Source: Bugula neritina (lineage: Eukaryota > Animalia > Bryozoa). From it: a DNA stretch of 64,000 bases. This document shows positions 44,636-64,000 of the stretch, piece by piece; position 1 is the stretch's first letter; each line of letters begins with the position of its first letter. The notes beneath the pieces were generated by a model. The model worked only from the letters and a program-made list of their open reading frames with translations. It did no database searches and was not told the origin of the DNA. The stretch spans positions 12,633,801 through 12,697,800 of the forward strand of contig OZ037767.1 of the NCBI GenBank assembly GCA_964035545.1, in the 5' to 3' direction. Position numbers and translations under genes: made by a program.

Positions 44636-46613
44636 TAACTGCATGCTATCAAATATTCTACCTTTGAATTTTTATAGAGAAAATTTGTAATTTTATTTTA
44701 TCCTAAGCACATGATGAAGTCTTTGGAAGTGTAGAACTTACTATTGATTTAATAAACTCTATCTAACGGCTGCAGAACTTAACAATTTGTATTTTCATCA
44801 AAGAAAGTATGAAACTCTGAGACTGCTTTGTTCTTTAAGTTGGCATTTTTCGAAATGTAGTGTGACAGTTTTGATTTTAGAACTTGACATAAGAGCATCG
44901 ATATAACTTGAGATAAAGCTCAATGTCAAACTTCTCAAGGTGATTATCACTCAAATTATCATTTAATGCACATTTATATGTAACAATGCTTGTTAGTTTC
45001 ACAAGCAGCAGTTAGGAAATAGCTTGTAGCAGCACAAAATGGGTGCAGCGGTTGGGGTTTAGAGTTCCAACACCCATTTCTTTACAAACACTGCAGTCAA
45101 TAACCCCAATTTTGTGCTGCTTTTAGCAATTCCCCAGCAGTTAAAAAGCCAGCTTTGAGTTCTCCTTATGACTGTAACAGGTACACAGGTGAGGTATTAT
45201 TACTTATTTAAACTGAGTTACATTGCAAACAGATGCTGAATTGCTCAACAATGGAGAGTCTCCTACGCGATCAGCTTGTAGGTAGAAGGGAAGACATAAT
45301 GCATATACCTTACATATTTCCGTTCACTCATGGCTTTCACATCAACTTGTAACATCTTTTCTCGTAAAGTACACAAGTTTGAAATATAATGAAATGTAAA
45401 ATTCATGCTCAGCTTTTCAGTAGAGTTTCACAAGTCTATATTTTTTTTGAGTTGGCAGAAGCCAGATATATTAAATAAAGGTTTGAGTTTTAATTCCTAA
45501 ATTAATAGCACATGTGTGAACAAATCAAAGCCAGGTGATATCTGATTTAATTTTAAAGGTTCTACGGCTTAAATTACTTGGCTACTGAAAAACCTAAAAA
45601 GTGAACACCAATATGAAATCATATTGATAAAATTTATTAGAATTTTAAGGATCGGTCTGTGAAAAGGCATATAACGAAAAATATTGTGTTTCATGGCCAT
45701 ACCACATTGTATAGAGTTGCATTAGTTAAAACTAATTAAAAACTATGCAATCCATGCACTTAAAAGAAGTTACTAATAAAACATATGCAGCTATAAAATT
45801 AGCATTATTGTAGACTGTAGTTATATAATGCTGTGATATAAGTTTCAATTTTTAACTTGCTAGTAATTTGTGTCCAAGATTTATGTTGCAGTTAACACCC
45901 AGCTAGATATTCTTTGTTGTCTCACCTCTTATAAATTGAGCTCTATAACTTCAGTTTCCAATAGAAAAATTATTTTACTTACTCAGTGTGTAGCTAAACT
46001 GAAAACTAAGTGTTCAAAGCTGTCCTTTTCAGAATCACACCAAAGCAGTAATATGTTCTTTGAGAATTAAAGATTTATTTATCGCTCTAAAATAAAAATA
46101 ATTAAATATGCAAACTCCACTAAGACAATAATGGCTTATTCTAGCATGTTCCAGGCACTTTTTTTAATAATTTATTCAGCCAATTATTATGAGCAGGAAA
46201 ACCAATAGCTGCCCACAAATTAATACAATCAAATATTAATATAATTTTCTTTGTCAAAGACAATATAAATAATAAATAAAGATTAAATTTAAAATGTAGA
46301 GAGGCAAACCTGAAATGCAAAATCCAGCAATATATAAAAAATATGCATGCTGAGTATGATTGAATTCTTAATTTAGCTTTTTTGCTGATAATATTCTGCA
46401 ATTTATCTCACAGCTATAAAAAAACTTAAACTCGAAGTCGAGTTTACATGCACATAATATTATTATGCACACGTTTATAGATGGTTCGACTAAGGGTAAG
46501 TAGGGTAAGTAGTACTTGGCAGGTCTGTAAGCTATAATAGTTGATAGGTCTGAATGAAACTGATTCATTCGTTAAACTGATTACGCGGGCTGTTGCGACA
46601 TCAGTGATATTGG

Positions 46614-46804
46614 TATATAAACACCTAGCACCTTGCAAATAAATTATTAGATACAGATCGAGTGCTTCACAAATCAACGTTGTATCAGCTCTCAACATTG
46701 CAGAAAGAATAAATTTTTTTGGATAAATCAGAGCTTTACCTACTCATACAGTATACTCAGAGTTGCTATACTTTTGTCATCAACACAATTATTATCATGT
46801 AAGT
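46614..46804 (+). promoter_or_regulatory. Putative TATA promoter and non-coding first exon of the six-cysteine peptide gene
   Basis: TATATAAA at 46614-46621 is followed about 180 nt later by a consensus donor cat|GTAAGT at 46799. This donor could pair with the acceptor at 47723. Confidence 0.45.
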
Positions 46805-47587
46805 ATAATCGATTTTCACTAAGATCAGACATTCCTGAAATATACACACACTTAATTAGCTAAACAGATCTTCCCCTTGTGAAGTTAGGGCTGTCTGAAC
46901 CCATGGATATAATGACAGTACTGATGGTAGGTGATGTTTAGACTGCTCGTTCATTGTGCTTCAAACTCGACTGCCAATACAGTTTCAAAAGAGTACTCTT
47001 TTTCTAACATCACTATAAGTAGATTAAATGCTATTTACTAGTGCCATCATAATTTAGGCTGCCTTCTTAAACATTGGCTTAGAGTAGTTTTTAGGCTTCC
47101 AGAATCATTGGGTTCTTGAAGATATGACAGAGATATGACAATTTAGTAGATCCTAAATTTCGTTTAATTCGAAGGCCTCCTATTTTTTATTACAGTGTTT
47201 AGGTTGCTTTTGCACCAATTGAAGCTAAATCAATAATTTATAGAATAATTCATGCAAAAACAGCCGCAATATTCTAGAGATGATATGAGCCATATACTGA
47301 CTCTCGGTAATAAAATAGACTTGAGCCAATACAGGCAAAACTAATCTTAATTTAAATGCACAGTTCAATATGTAAGATAAAAATAAACAGGCACTGGTTA
47401 TTTTTCTGATGGTCTTTGCAATGTTACAGTATTATGTTGTTTATTCAATACTTTTGACAAATTTAAAAATATTATGTGAGAAGTTATGATAAGTTATTTT
47501 CTACATAAATCTGTATAAAAGAAAAAAAAGCAGAAACCTCCATTTTACTTTATTATATTTTCAAGCCTTTTTGGCCAATGCTCTATT

Positions 47588-47681
47588 CACTCACTCACTC
47601 ACTCACTCACTTACTCACTCACTCACTCACTCACTCACTCACTCACTCACTCACTCACTCACTCACTCACTCACTCACTCA
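47588..47681. repeat. (TCAC)n microsatellite
   Basis: Seen directly; about 40 bp upstream of the peptide gene's splice acceptor. Confidence 0.97.
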
Positions 47682-47751
47682 ACTCATTCAATAATATTCA
47701 AACAAATTCCATTTATGTTTTAGATATTGGTCTTCAGGACTTTAGCAGACC

Positions 47752-48024
47752 ATGACTTTCTGTTTGCTCAACATAATTGCATTAATAGCCTTATATTCAA
47801 TCACTTTGAGTGTATTACGGGTGGATGGAAGAACCATACCAACAATCCATTTAAGTGACGTAGAACAGAACCACTGCAACAACGAGATGATAGTAAAAGA
47901 TGGAAGTCGAACTGTAGACTGCTATTTATGTGGCAGAGTAATGGAAAGTCCGTTTATAATGTCCAGATGTTGTGCTAATCAATTAGAAGTTGTAGCATTT
48001 TGCTACCTGTACTTATATGAATAA
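47752..48024 (+). CDS. Secreted six-cysteine peptide precursor (90 aa), candidate neurohormone with a SISP-like / CHH-ITP-like framework
   Basis: Good start context (gaccATGa), a hydrophobic signal peptide MTFCLLNIIALIALYSITLSVLRVDG, and a mature region with C-x14-C-x2-C-x12-CC-x9-C. A splice acceptor (tttatgttttag, ending 47723) lies just upstream. AATAAA follows at about 48435. Confidence 0.8.
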   Translation: MTFCLLNIIALIALYSITLSVLRVDGRTIPTIHLSDVEQNHCNNEMIVKDGSRTVDCYLCGRVMESPFIMSRCCANQLEVVAFCYLYLYE

Positions 48025-50393
48025 CAGTGAGAGCACAACTCTCACAAACAATATACTCCATTCCATATTATTTTTTTACAAGACAACTCTCAATTCTTAG
48101 CACACAGCTGTGTCAATTGTTAAGTTATTACTGAATTATATATCTTATTATGTTTTTGGTTCTAGTCAAGGTTAGTGCAAATTATTACAATATGTTACAT
48201 TTGTATGTATTTTTATTATCATCTTCAATTTTGTTCTAATTTTCAATTATATTGTTACGTGTTTAATAATTAGAATACTGTTTATAGCTCATATTTACTT
48301 ATTATCAAATGAAAAAGGGAAGGTAATACTGTGTCAGGGATATTAAGATATTCCCATTTTCAAACTGTGCATGTTTTCAAGGCCTTAGAGCATAGTCCCA
48401 CTCAATGCATTCCTCTTCACCAGTATTATTCTAAAATAAAATATATTCATAGAAATTATGAAAATAGATGAACCTGCGTTGTACTGCTCTATAAAAATGT
48501 ATCTGTCGCATATATCAACATCATAATACTGACAGTACAAATTATACACCACTTAAAATAAGAACTGATTATAAGCAAATAAAGTTTAGGTATTTGCTTT
48601 AACACACACGCACCTGCACACACCTAATGCATGCAGCATGTTGAAACATCATGTGACAACAACATGTCACATGGCCCTGTGACATGTTACAAAATCATGT
48701 GACAACTTCTAGATTTTATATTTTGTGTTGTTCAATTCCTACTCAGAGCATTCATGTGTAAAAAGGTTGCATAACATCGATGAGAATATTATTTAAGTCG
48801 ATCATTTAGGAAGGTTTTGAGTAGAATTTATCAGCTCTTTCCAAAAACTTTCATCTAAAATATTTCTCAATATGTATTTGCTGAATTCCAGTAGAGCTCT
48901 TTCAGGGGCCAAGGCTAAAGAAGAACTCGGCTATTTATAATTAAGCAAGTTGGTTAAAGCGGTGCGGAGTTGGTGGTCACTGAACGCATTGGTTAGAAGT
49001 TTAGCTTGAGTTAGGAGTTGGGGTTTGGATTTGGGTCAAAGATTTTTGCAATCAGTTACCCACAACTCTTTGGCGTTGCTTTTAGCAATGTTCATTGCCT
49101 TTACTATTCAAAGCAAGCTACAATGTTAATATAACAGTATATAAGTGTCTAACATTACATTAATATACTGCTACATCCCAGTTTCCACAATTTGTCTTTT
49201 TGTAAATGGAAATATCTAAACTATAAAACATGAATCAATAACCTAATGAATTAATGAAAACCTAATGGAACTGTAGAGAATAACATAATAATATACGGTT
49301 TTTAGAATATAGAAGATTAACAAAAATTCTCATAAATTGTGCAAAGACTTTGAATTTGACAGTTTGTCATTTTATTCTTCAAAGATTTTTTACTCTTTTG
49401 TCAGTTTATTGATCTAAAATATACTACATAAATATGGAAACACATTTATTACACATTTATATACACAGAATCACATTAATCTTCGATATGTGTAAGTTGA
49501 AAAACTAAAGTTTCTAAAATTAGTTGGAGTGAGACATTCCATTGTTTAATTGATCAACATCTTGTAGGCTTATGCCTTGAAGGATAGGCAAGTTGTAATA
49601 TATAGCTTAATAGAATGTGTTTATATTGCTAAGTTTTAAAACAATATGATAATAATGGCTTCTAGCTTAGATGTCTCATCGGTTGATTGTTCACTAAAAT
49701 TTATGTACGTACCTAATACAAATAACAGCTAATCTTACAATTACAACTAGCAACTTAGCTTTTATACAAATACCATGATTTGATTTTTCTGATACTTAAT
49801 TTGTTATAAGTGTTTATGATTAAAAACATCAAATGAACTCTGAAAAATTGCATATTCTTACAACACTAACTCAGTTTACAAGTCAATTAAACTTTTTACT
49901 ATAATTTATAGAAAACATTTTAAGTACACTATTTTAATGAATTTGAAATCAAAAATATAATTTACAATAATTTACGTAAAAGATGAATAAACTTGAAAAG
50001 ATTGAATCTTAAATTTTAGGAATTTTGGCTATTAATGTACTTTTATTTATATAGAAAGATATTAATTATTATGCTTGGTATACAATTATAAAGGCCACTA
50101 GAAAAATACCATGCTAAAGTCTATAAATAAACAACATGAAGCCTCCAACAATAAAATTTTCAACTTTCAGCTTTCACATTATATACACAAACACACTAAA
50201 TAAAACTTGCATATGAGCTTTTGCAATTGATTATACAAGCTAGGTATATAATCCATGTTTACAGTACATATACATGTATACGATAAATACAGTGAGTGTT
50301 GTCTCATAATATATTCATAGGTAAATCATTAAACATATTTTATATTCTACTGAAAGATGAAGTCCTTTTTAATTATAGTTCTAAAGAAGTTAA

Positions 50394-51173: not shown

Positions 51174-51472
51174 ATAACTTTTGTATTGTTTACAACATGT
51201 CTCCTTTCCCTCCGCCCTTCTTTCGATTCTATACATCGGGAAATGTGCCGACGTGAATATAAGCATTTTGCAAGGCTATAAAAGCATGAGGAAACGCTAT
51301 AACGTTTACTTATTTAAGCAATAATAATATTTAGACAGTTCGACTCTGAGCAATCATGTTGCGATGCTTAGTAAATTTGAATTTAATAAATATATCCACC
51401 CAATTAGGTCGTTTCTAGGAACTGGCGCGTACTCAGCAGGTGGCTACCCGCGCTTTGATTGATCATTTGGCC

Positions 51473-53539
51473 ATGCAAAAAGTCGCGCTTAAAACACCCG
51501 CTAAAACCTTTGTCAGGTTTTGTAACTCGGGGCTGTTGCACTCTGCAGTTCTTTCAGTTGATGCTCAAATTGTAAACAAAATGGCATCAATAAACAAATC
51601 GCCTTTAGCTAGTCCGCTGAAACAAGTAACTAACACACTAATGTCCGCATCACCTCAGAAACGGTTTAAATCGGAAAATCAAAGTGAAATTTCTCGAAAC
51701 ACTGCTTTAAATACAAAATCTCAACCTGTTCTAAGGTTTGCTAAACTGACGGATCAAGCTACCACTCCTACAAGGGGTTCTAAATATGCTGCCGGTTATG
51801 ATTTATACAGGTAAACATAAAATATAGAGAACAACCCAGTCTTGCATTCATAGTCGGTATGATAGTCAGTGTGATATTCATTATTATTTTTATTGTCACA
51901 GTGATGGTCATACTTATACTCATAACTCATAGATGTAGTGGTAGTCATACTCAATCTCATACTCTGTGCTCGCCTAGTCTTAGTCTTACTGGTGTGATAC
52001 TGATATTCATAGTCAATGTTATAGTGGGTGTGACTTTGATAGACTTCAGTTGATGATACTCTAACCTCTACTCACACATACTCATACTGATAGTGATACT
52101 GTGAAACTGGAAATGAAATTGAATGTGATAGTCAGACTCGTAGTGATAGTGATAGTCAAACTCATGCTGAGATCCATAGGATAAGGATGGTCGCAGTACT
52201 AGTGATAGTCATAATAAAATTGGGAGTTGAACTCAAGTTAGAAGTCTTGTCATACAAGTATTAGTATAATGATCACCATTGATCAGAGATTAGATCTAAA
52301 GTTAGTTCGAATTTAAAAGTTCGACAACAAGTATAACACTGTGAAGTACACTTTCAGTTATGACTTTAAGTAAATACATCATTACTGATTTAGATTAGAC
52401 ATTATTCATCATAATTAGTAAAACTGAAAGTTGAGGTAATTACTATTTGACTGAATTAGTAATGCTAACAAGTCCTCTTTAATTTCAAACTCAATTTGCA
52501 ATCAACCAGTAAACATGGAATTTTTAGAACTGCAAAAGGTTAGGGAATGAAATTAATAGACCTGTATGTCTGTCTTAAGTTAGTAAAAACTATTAATTCT
52601 ATTTTCTAATAATTATCTCACCTTCATGACTCTATGTGTTTCTAGTGCACATGAGTGTGTGATTCCAGCCAGAGGAAAGAGTTTGATAAAAACAGACATA
52701 CAAATAGAGCTCCCCTCCGGGTGTTATGGCAGAGTGGCTCCACGCTCTGGTTTGGCTCATAAACACTTCCTGGACGTAGGCGCCGGTGTCATTGACGAAG
52801 ATTACAGAGGGAATGTTGGCGTTATTATGTTCAACTTCAACTCTGAGGACTATAAGGTAACTTATTATCATTTTGACTTCGTTAGTTTACTTCTGAATTT
52901 GTTCAAATTCAGTCTGTTTCCCTTTTATTATAATCTTTACAATATCCTATAACTTGCAAGTTGTCATTCACATTCTATATAATGATTATAAATTGTCTTT
53001 AGTTTTAACTTGTTAACTAATATCCTGAATTGCTAGTGATTATCTCCTAAAAACTCACCTGGGTTTATAGTCGTCATCCCTTTGAGAAGCCCCTGTTTAT
53101 AAGCATGCTAAGGATTTATTCATTATTGTGACACAGGAGCAATTATGACTGAATGCTCTTCATAACATTACCAATGGCCATTACTGGGATTCAAACCACT
53201 AACCTTGTGTTTAATAAGCCAGTGCTCTAACCACTAGACCACGGCTGCTCCTGCTAATGAATATTGTGCAATATATATTGATATAATGTAATAATATAAT
53301 ATATTTTTGCTGTACCAATGGCTATAAAGTTTAATAAATGCTGAAGAAGATTATAAAGTAAAGTTACTGCCACAAGTTTCACATATTATGTGAGTGTTCT
53401 CACTGTGCAGGTGGAGAAGGGAGACAGGGTAGCTCAGCTGATATGCGAAAGAATCTACTACCCTGAACTGCAGGAAGTTGAATCTCTAACTGATACAGAA
53501 AGAGGCTCCGGAGGGTACGGCTCTACCGGTAAAAAATGA
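51473..53539 (+). CDS. DUT: dUTP pyrophosphatase (trimeric dUTPase); 225 aa from ATG 51473 or 189 aa from ATG 51581
   Basis: Exons 51473-51810, 52646-52856 and 53411-53539. All five motifs are present: [53 protein letters not shown]-like SPQKRFK. AATAAA at about 54022. Confidence 0.97.
53048..53251 (-). mobile_element. tRNA-derived SINE, family A, in dUTPase intron 2
   Basis: Reverse complement of family A (CTCTAACCACTAGACCACGGCTGCTCC; ACAGGAGCAATTATGACTG; GTTTATAGTCG). Confidence 0.85.
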
Positions 53540-61045: not shown

Positions 61046-61766
61046 TGTACACATCTTTGCCTAGTCATTCATGTGGTTCAACATTGAATAAATACTGTGA
61101 AATAATGCAATATTTGGCAGCAAATTGGCTGACAATAGCTGCCTGGCAATTTCGCTGCAGATAATATAAAGCATAGGAGACTTCGTTCCATAGTTTAGCT
61201 TAACAAAAAGTATATAAAAATTATGTATAAAAACACAAAATGATGAGTGTTGAAAACAATATATTATTAGTATTTAGCAATATAACATAATTTTTATATA
61301 GATGCAAATTATGGGAAAAATTATTTTTGTAATAATAGTATGTGCAGCAAATATTTACTTAAAAATATAAACCTAGCAGCAAATATGAGTTATTAACTAA
61401 TCGATTCTTTTATTTATCAATAATTATAACAATTACTAATTATATAGTCTTAAAAGAGAAGCAGATTTCTTGGGTATAGTAACAAAAGGTTAATATTCTG
61501 TATTAATTGTTGATCGCCAGACACATATTTTAAAATATTACTTTTATTAGTAATAAAACCTCTTTTCTAGTATTACATAACTTAAAAATCTCAGCAAAAA
61601 TACACACCTTTGTATATAGATAAACTCGTCAGATAAATTCAATCATTAAAATTACCATTTATATTAACCAAAATCATACAGCAATATTGACATTTCAAAA
61701 GAACTGACAGCTTTCTTTTACACTTATGTAATATATAGCAAATTTAATATATATTATTATTATTAT

Positions 61767-62722
<956 letters not shown>

Positions 62723-64000
62723 ATAAAATAATTTAGTATATTACGCATTTTGAATTATTTTAAATTGTCATCAAACATTGTAATTTTTTTTTTATACTTT
62801 AGTGCACAAAAGCAAATATTTAAATGATGTTATGCTGTTATTTTGCTGCAGCTAATGCAGTATATGTATACTGTATACACATATTAGGAACTATGATTCT
62901 CAGCTATATTTATGACAAAACCTATCTGTATTTTAACCTGCATTATGTCAAATCATGAGAAACTTTAAGAACAGCAAGCAGTTACATGGTCTGGTAGAGT
63001 CAATGCATTTATGAATAATTGCATACAATAATTGTCGTTACTAGGTTGTTAAGGCAGCAGATTAGCTTGCGCTGCCTTTCCAGATTAATAACTCATGACA
63101 ACTTCTAACAGCTAATTACTGTATTAGCAATTACACTAAAGCAGTGGCTACATAAATTTGATATTAAAATTTAACTACAGTAATTATTGATAACATTCAT
63201 TATTTTATTGTAATATTTTCGAGTGTCTCCTTAAGCATTATGACAAGTAAACAACTAAATATACATTCAATATTGCTGCAGGTGTGCCTGCTGGACATTA
63301 GCTTACTAATACATGGTACGCTGTATTCTGATTGGCTATTTGAAATGCCTGAGATAATTATTTTAATGCAACTCGTTTACCATCTATAAGTCAACCGGGT
63401 AAAAAATATATGTTTTTGAGAAACATCAAGTAGAAATCTTCATTAACTAAAACATCAAAGTACTATCTTTTAGTTTTTAAAGTAAAAAAAATTAGACAAA
63501 ATTTGCATAATAAATAAGTTAGTCAAATACTTGATAATCTTCTTCAACTTTTCAACTTGCTCGCTTATAGTGAAAGCTAGGATTTTTCAAACACTATATG
63601 ACTAGCTATTGCCTAATAATGACAAAGTTATGCATTGCACTGCAGTTTTGCATTGAATCTCTTATTATACAAGAATAGTTTTTAAAAACATCGCTATTTG
63701 TTTATAAAGCTGGTTTATAACAATAAAATTTTATAAAAAAAAATCAAAATGGTAATATAATACATATGATACATAATATTATATTATAACACTCTATTTT
63801 TGTATATTACAATATAATATATAATATGCTGAGTTCTTACTGCATTGCTGTATACCATAGTAGCATGCAGTCTTCTGCATAGCATTATAGCATGTATATA
63901 ACACAATAATTACATAGCATTATAGCATGCAGCGCACTGCATAACATTATAGTGTGCAATGCAAGCATTTAGATACTGTTTATCATTATATATATATATA

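Follow-up and report, generated by a model that had tools for sequence, protein, structure and literature searches.

The sodium-influx-stimulating peptide (SISP) of the snail Lymnaea stagnalis (UniProt P42579) is a hormone of the neurosecretory yellow cells that has a part in ion and water regulation (PMC8172996). Its precursor consists of a signal peptide and one peptide that undergoes no dibasic processing, and the mature sequence has the cysteine framework C-x9-C-x2-C-x14-CC-x9-C followed by an 18-residue tail (PMC8172996, supplementary table 1). SISP has been known since 1993 and is seldom discussed in the literature; homologues are annotated in Aplysia and have been found in Tritonia. Peptides of the CHH/ITP superfamily, like SISP, act in ion and water transport. 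A 2020 review treats this superfamily as ecdysozoan, and Koch et al. (2023; PMC10501145) presented a four-cysteine peptide, termed CHH DREP, as its first spiralian member, with SISP going unmentioned. Here we describe a gene for a six-cysteine peptide in a stretch of 64,000 nucleotides from the bryozoan Bugula neritina (contig OZ037767.1, positions 12,633,801 to 12,697,800 of the forward strand), which is referred to as the window, and we compare this gene with SISP and with the CHH/ITP superfamily.

The peptide in question is encoded by an open reading frame (ORF) of 90 codons and carries the framework C-x14-C-x2-C-x12-CC-x9-C in its mature part. Our overall reading, to which we assign a probability of roughly 0.6, is that it is a SISP-like secreted signalling peptide, and that the family to which it belongs is probably a spiralian branch of the CHH/ITP superfamily or a sister to it; the hormonal role, the target and the kinship with CHH are elements of this reading that we infer.

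The coding sequence and its conservation

The positions of the features of the gene are collected in Table 1. The ORF, signal peptide, cysteine framework, absence of dibasic sites, TATA box, splice donor and acceptor and polyadenylation signal that an earlier note on this DNA had listed are all present in the sequence. The mature peptide has six residues after the last cysteine and contains no KR, RR or KK. We propose a compact gene model in which exon 1 is non-coding, an intron lies in the 5' untranslated region (UTR) and a second exon carries the whole coding sequence, and that removal of the signal peptide from the 90-residue prepropeptide would yield one 64-residue peptide with no further dibasic processing.

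To judge conservation, the locus was aligned with a JGI metagenome contig of 1,622 bp (L005), which covers positions 46661-48229 of the window at 87% identity and is best read as coming from a sibling species or as a deep haplotype. It can be seen that the coding sequence is 94.9% identical to L005, whereas the proposed exon 1 together with the intron reaches about 88% and the 3' flank 90%; the proposed exon 1 taken by itself (87.7%) is not above the level of the intron. Between the two coding sequences there are 8 synonymous changes and 5 non-synonymous ones, and the ratio of non-synonymous to synonymous rates (dN/dS) is 0.15 (binomial p 0.0017). Of the five amino-acid replacements, four sit in the signal peptide, and the mature part alone shows 7 synonymous changes and 1 non-synonymous change (dN/dS 0.03). 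L005 likewise preserves the donor and each of the three candidate acceptors. We conclude from these comparisons that the gene is real and conserved by selection, and that its product is a small secreted peptide with six cysteines.

A six-cysteine family and its likeness to SISP

The gene had initially been described as an orphan, which is not borne out, as there is a paralog in the same genome and a family of relatives that includes a bivalve. The paralog (G000:C4:3301822-3302055 on the + strand, equivalent to L002:1378-1614) is a single ORF of 78 amino acids with the framework C-x9-C-x2-C-x12-CC-x9-C, and an AG acceptor lies immediately 5' of its ATG. It has the motifs VDCYLCGR..ES..CCA..L..FC.LYL in common with the window peptide and reads AEG/YK at the position aligned to the predicted VDG/RT cleavage. 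When compared with its counterpart on a Logan contig (L009), the paralog gave a dN/dS of 0.12 (p 2e-4). A profile search of the B. neritina genome (216 Mb) found no third copy beyond the window gene and this paralog.

An exhaustive hidden Markov model (HMM) search, for which the profile was built from the mature parts of three sequences, gave 29 matches, of which 12 were short proteins with a signal peptide that aligned over nearly the whole profile; long matches made up of several stretches were rejected as noise of the CxxC zinc-finger type. The pearl oyster Pinctada fucata contributes one family member, an uncharacterised protein, and the remaining members found by HMM come from marine metagenome or Logan contigs. 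The framework C-x(8-18)-C-x2-C-x12-CC-x9-C is present in all members and the six cysteines are invariant in an alignment of 16 sequences (the window peptide and 15 relatives), so that homologues conserving all six cysteines, to which the earlier note had looked as a test of its proposal, have been found. Two members, P0026 and P0029, have the furin-type sequences RARR and RRVAR, respectively, just upstream of the domain, an arrangement that is prohormone-like. Word searches with alignments gave no further members, and no named SISP was among the matches of either the word or the HMM searches with the family; a scan of metagenome loci gave 107 pattern matches, none of which was confirmed.

In 14 of the 16 sequences the C-terminus lies 3-6 residues past the last cysteine, and in P0008 and P0017 it is longer or uncertain. 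These two proteins of the window-type clade (loci L011, a TARA metagenome scaffold, and L010) read past the usual C-terminus as ..YLTGG.. and ..YLGG.., which may represent a Gly amidation signal and, after it, a splice donor that went unrecognised; read-through by the gene caller is the other possibility. Translation of the P0008 locus does not give the stored protein.

In a quick tree the window gene and its paralog fall in different clades with moderate support (0.78-0.89), and the duplication that gave rise to them would therefore be old. At each of the seven independent family loci examined, an uninterrupted coding region is preceded by a pyrimidine tract and an AG, which lie 0-30 nt 5' of the ATG. 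Because the acceptor motif is found at each of these loci, a 5'-UTR intron followed by a single coding exon appears to be conserved in the family. The nematode SL1 leader was looked for and was absent, which argues that the acceptor near the ATG does not reflect trans-splicing of the nematode type. The absence of SL1, like the label 'symbiont metagenome' on runs that contain part of this stretch, is compatible with B. neritina as the source. The window gene is a member of a lophotrochozoan family whose hallmark is C-x(8-18)-C-x2-C-x12-CC-x9-C close to the C-terminus.

The family was compared with Lymnaea SISP by eye throughout. The framework C...CYxC...CC-x9-C that the earlier note had given for SISP is correct according to the printed sequence (PMC8172996). 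Like the precursor of the window peptide, that of SISP comprises a signal peptide followed by just one long mature peptide, free of internal dibasic processing, and SISP has in common with the window peptide and the 15 relatives six cysteines that include C-x2-C, an adjacent CC pair and CC-x9-C. The likeness extends to shorter motifs: CYxCA of SISP is identical to that of member P0025, VYQxCC is that of the paralog but for one residue, and both SISP and the family have E[YF]C at the last cysteine and, in loop 3, a Ser directly after an acidic residue. The loop between C1 and C2 is nine residues long in SISP and in the paralog. To judge from these motifs, SISP is probably the closest described relative of the family, and it is likely that the window gene is a member of a SISP-type family.

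Possible relation to the CHH/ITP superfamily, and a proposed role

CHH and ITP peptides have the framework C-x15-C-x2-C-x12-C-x3-C-x8-C. CHH, MIH and ITP are secreted six-cysteine helical neurohormones of about 70 amino acids, to which the window peptide, with its predicted helices, is similar in kind, and over the first four cysteines their loops of 15, 2 and 12 residues compare with 14, 2 and 12 in the window peptide, in keeping with the CHH-like spacing that had been proposed for this part of the molecule. Beyond it the two differ, with C4-x3-C5-x8-C6 in CHH against CC-x9-C in the window peptide, such that C4 to C6 spans 12 in the former and 10 in the latter. The framework of eclosion hormone starts C-x3-C-x2-C, in contrast to the family, where the C1-C2 loop has 8-18 residues; there was no Pfam match to eclosion hormone (PF04736) among the family members, and its ESM scores (0.78-0.81) were below those of the CHH clusters.

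By the features of the ESM protein language model, the neighbours of the window peptide were arthropod clusters (0.92) and a cluster that is partly PF01147 (0.88), followed by CHH1L and eclosion hormone. Member P0012 and the window peptide are only about 26% identical, and for P0012 PF01147 is carried by each of the three nearest named clusters (0.88, 0.85 and 0.82), which rank ahead of eclosion hormone. The PF01147 neighbours of these two divergent members are arthropod and nematode clusters. The three top ESM Atlas clusters (0.92, with 200/256 features in common) are unannotated arthropod proteins of 102-105 amino acids, so that the CC-type framework may have endogenous relatives in arthropods. 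A search for PF01147 across the B. neritina genome gave sub-threshold matches only, and similar ones were obtained with bacterial control genomes; the best of them (L012) was discarded as its translation lacks the cysteine pattern, and for the second (L013) the reading covered a single strand, probably not the one that bears the match.

The AlphaFold2 (AF2) model of the mature peptide has a pLDDT of 78, rising to about 90 over residues 30-64, and comprises a hairpin (residues 17-30) and three helices (31-38, 41-48 and 52-63). Its best structural matches in the PDB were the centipede three-helix toxins SLPTX Ssm6a (2MZ4), k-Ssm1a (2M35) and SSD609 (2MVT), with which the model has the three-helix core in common; no solved CHH or MIH structure was matched. 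Foldseek gave no match, and with a second model neither Foldseek nor a search of the PDB found anything. When the family profile was run against PDB sequences no CHH or MIH was found, and k-Ssm1a ranked fourth (E 0.96) amid zinc-finger matches at noise level. The best PDB sequence match of the paralog was scoloptoxin SSD609 (E 0.55), with the six cysteines in register and a single one-residue gap; the SSD609 framework, C-x9-C-x2-C-x12-CC-x8-C, is that of the paralog bar one residue. Pfam, PDB sequences and an initial word search gave nothing meaningful for the window peptide; a weak resemblance to the zinc ribbon of eS27 (E 0.004-0.014) was set aside as chance, since the protein is secreted and only half of the zinc-ribbon motif is present. 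Matches to an unrelated family such as the defensins or knottins, which the earlier note had said would speak against its proposal, were not found. The literature assigns Ssm6a to the HAND toxins, within the CHH superfamily, and k-Ssm1a and SSD609 are look-alikes of the spiralian CHH DREP (PMC10501145).

The CHH DREPs, along with the CHH doppelganger toxins of cone snails, resemble the present family in being spiralian and secreted and in having the domain directly after the signal peptide. The CHH DREPs further resemble it in having a C-x2-C-G motif, a 12-residue loop to the next cysteine, and k-Ssm1a and SSD609 as top look-alikes in the PDB. They are unlike it in having four cysteines (C-x2-C-x12-C-x11-C), the motif CGE[FY][YF]G and a phase-2 coding intron (Koch et al., 2023; PMC10501145), and no CGE[FY][YF]G motif was found in the B. 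neritina genome under a strict pattern. We conclude on the basis of these differences that the CHH DREPs are a family separate from this one and are not the same genes.

The ESM neighbours, the Pfam hint (one member matching PF01147 at E 0.062) and the centipede toxins are concordant and point, weakly but consistently, to the CHH/ITP superfamily. This much of the link between SISP and CHH that the earlier note had suggested is retained; on the other side there is no significant CHH or MIH profile or fold match and no coding intron, and we regard common ancestry with the superfamily as an evenly balanced question.

With these comparisons in mind, we propose that three disulfides would stabilise the peptide, in a fold with a short hairpin ahead of three helices; were it CHH-like, the disulfides would be expected to join C1-C5, C2-C4 and C3-C6. 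It would serve as a secreted signalling peptide, either hormone or neuropeptide, acting at a membrane receptor to which the three-helix core is presented. A possible target is epithelial ion transport, as is the case for SISP and insect ITP, or some other homeostatic function may be served. The family would then represent the six-cysteine spiralian branch of the CHH/ITP superfamily, or a sister to it, with a CC-type framework common to the centipede three-helix toxins.

A number of observations weigh against this proposal. No RNA run with this stretch was found among the indexed sequencing runs, so that the transcript to which the earlier note had also looked as a test was not seen; the four runs compared at the locus are DNA contigs, only one of which, from the probable source sample, covers the gene, and no splice joints are present in them. 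A phase-2 intron interrupts the coding region of CHH genes, a structure that is ancestral according to Montagne (2010) as cited in a passage of PMC10501145, whereas the window gene, its paralog and six other loci have no coding intron. The window peptide has no match to PF01147 in Pfam, the one match among 14 members lies below the cut-off and there was none among 10 mature peptides; all the CHH-related scores are individually non-significant. The AF2 model places an N-terminal hairpin where CHH has a helix, and PDB searches with single sequences (the window peptide and three homologs) returned only zinc-ribbon and RING noise. As regards SISP, its loop 3 has 14 residues compared with 12 in every family member, its C-terminal tail has 18 residues compared with 3-6, and the likeness has been judged by eye only. 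Moreover, SISP comes from a freshwater snail in which Na+ uptake matters, whereas B. neritina is marine, and it is not obvious why a marine bryozoan should need a hormone of sodium uptake.

A potential explanation that would not need to invoke kinship with CHH is that the SISP-type family is confined to lophotrochozoans and has no common origin with CHH/ITP, the C-x2-C-x12 spacing and the helical fold being convergent. Such an origin would be consistent with the lack of a significant sequence or fold match to CHH or MIH, with the lack of the CHH-type phase-2 intron, with the adjacent C4 and C5 in place of the C-x3-C of CHH, and with the position of the weak PDB matches among zinc-finger matches at noise level. 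However, the ESM results for two divergent members, the Pfam hint and the centipede toxins all point to one superfamily, and the toxin framework is the same but for one residue, so we think an independent origin unlikely, if far from negligible. The nearest solved look-alikes are venom toxins, and the lack of an RNA run carrying the gene among the indexed runs might fit an inducible or stage-specific gene, and both points could be taken to indicate a secreted cysteine-rich effector (an antimicrobial or defence peptide, toxin, pheromone or matrix-associated peptide) built on a three-helix disulfide scaffold. We consider an effector improbable. The dN/dS of 0.03 in the mature part, the two genome copies and the conservation of old paralogs across taxa form a pattern that is typical of signalling peptides and is unlike that of the fast-evolving, expanded families of toxins and antimicrobial peptides, and the closest described peptide, SISP, is a hormone from neurosecretory cells. 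The secreted-type precursor, the constrained mature part, the invariant cysteines, the pair of old paralogs at low copy number and the furin-type prohormone sites of some relatives fit a signalling peptide better than a toxin or an antimicrobial.

There is also the question of whether the locus specifies a product at all. The ORF is short, it lies in an AT-rich region and it has no RNA support among the indexed runs, all of which might be expected of a chance ORF or a decaying pseudogene. Nevertheless, the frame stays open in the two sibling species as well as in the two paralogs, and the cysteines are invariant over 16 sequences from several sources. Given this and the significant synonymous excess, the constrained mature part and the conserved candidate splice sites, a chance ORF or pseudogene is very unlikely.

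If the peptide is indeed a SISP-like signalling peptide related to CHH/ITP, a wider picture can be put forward tentatively, which we hold to be possible but rather doubtful as a whole. SISP-like peptides would be the full-framework spiralian counterparts of CHH/ITP, Na+ uptake in snails and ITP-dependent transport in insects would go back to one protostome osmoregulatory hormone, and this branch, not classical ITP, would be the origin of the CC-type centipede toxins (Ssm6a, SSD609). Should this be true, the receptor type of ITP (a membrane guanylyl cyclase or a G protein-coupled receptor) would be a testable candidate for the SISP receptor, and a characterised ion-transport hormone of molluscs would be joined to the ITP system. 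Should the link fail, an unannotated conserved candidate peptide hormone and its paralog are still added to the bryozoan gene set. The six-cysteine SISP-like family is old, under selection and present in a bryozoan and a bivalve; by the alignments described above it is wider than the literature suggests, and the window gene is a new bryozoan member.

Features of the locus and neighbouring sequence

Table 1. Features of the six-cysteine peptide gene, in positions of the window
Feature	Position	Strand	Basis or remark
TATA-like box TATATAAA, candidate core promoter	46614-46621	+	sequence only; lies 5' of the reach of L005
Putative non-coding first exon, 5' end approximate	46645-46798	+	inferred from TATA box and donor
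Donor CAT/GTAAGT, consensus	46798/46799	+	sequence; kept in L005
Putative 5'-UTR intron GTAAGT...TTTTAG	46799-47723	+	sequence and L005 alignment
(CACT)n microsatellite within putative 5'-UTR intron	~47588-47681		sequence
Pyrimidine tract and AG acceptor	47722-47723	+	sequence
Two further candidate AGs before ATG	47736-47737, 47744-47745	+	sequence
ATG ORF, 90 codons, single coding exon	47752-48024	+	read from sequence
Signal peptide, residues 1-26, predicted cleavage VDG/RT	47752-47829	+	hydrophobic core, -3/-1 rule
Mature 64-aa peptide	47830-48021	+	C-x14-C-x2-C-x12-CC-x9-C
Stop codon TAA; TGA in sibling species	48022-48024	+	sequence, L005 comparison
AATAAA, candidate polyadenylation signal	48435-48440	+	sequence; implies 3' UTR of ~410 nt

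The microsatellite in the putative intron differs in length between the window and L005, which gives rise to alignment gaps of about 50 nt, and it was passed over as a repeat in the comparison with the sequencing runs. Over positions 45500-49500 the DNA run that is the probable source shows two haplotypes, at depths of about 58 and 78. Bubbles due to haplotype single-nucleotide polymorphisms and indels are dense in the non-coding flanks, and one collapsed contig spans 47693-48232, including the coding sequence.

Downstream of the peptide gene, an ORF of 124 amino acids at 51440-51814 on the + strand has a weak match to ATM-like tetratricopeptide repeats (PF25360; E 4e-4, below the cut-off) and is possibly an exon of a gene for an ATM-type kinase. 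Further along the window, at 61744-62748, there are four overlapping ORFs of 315-334 amino acids in several frames and on both strands, with no Pfam match; the open frames on both strands suggest that this is a low-complexity or repeat region.

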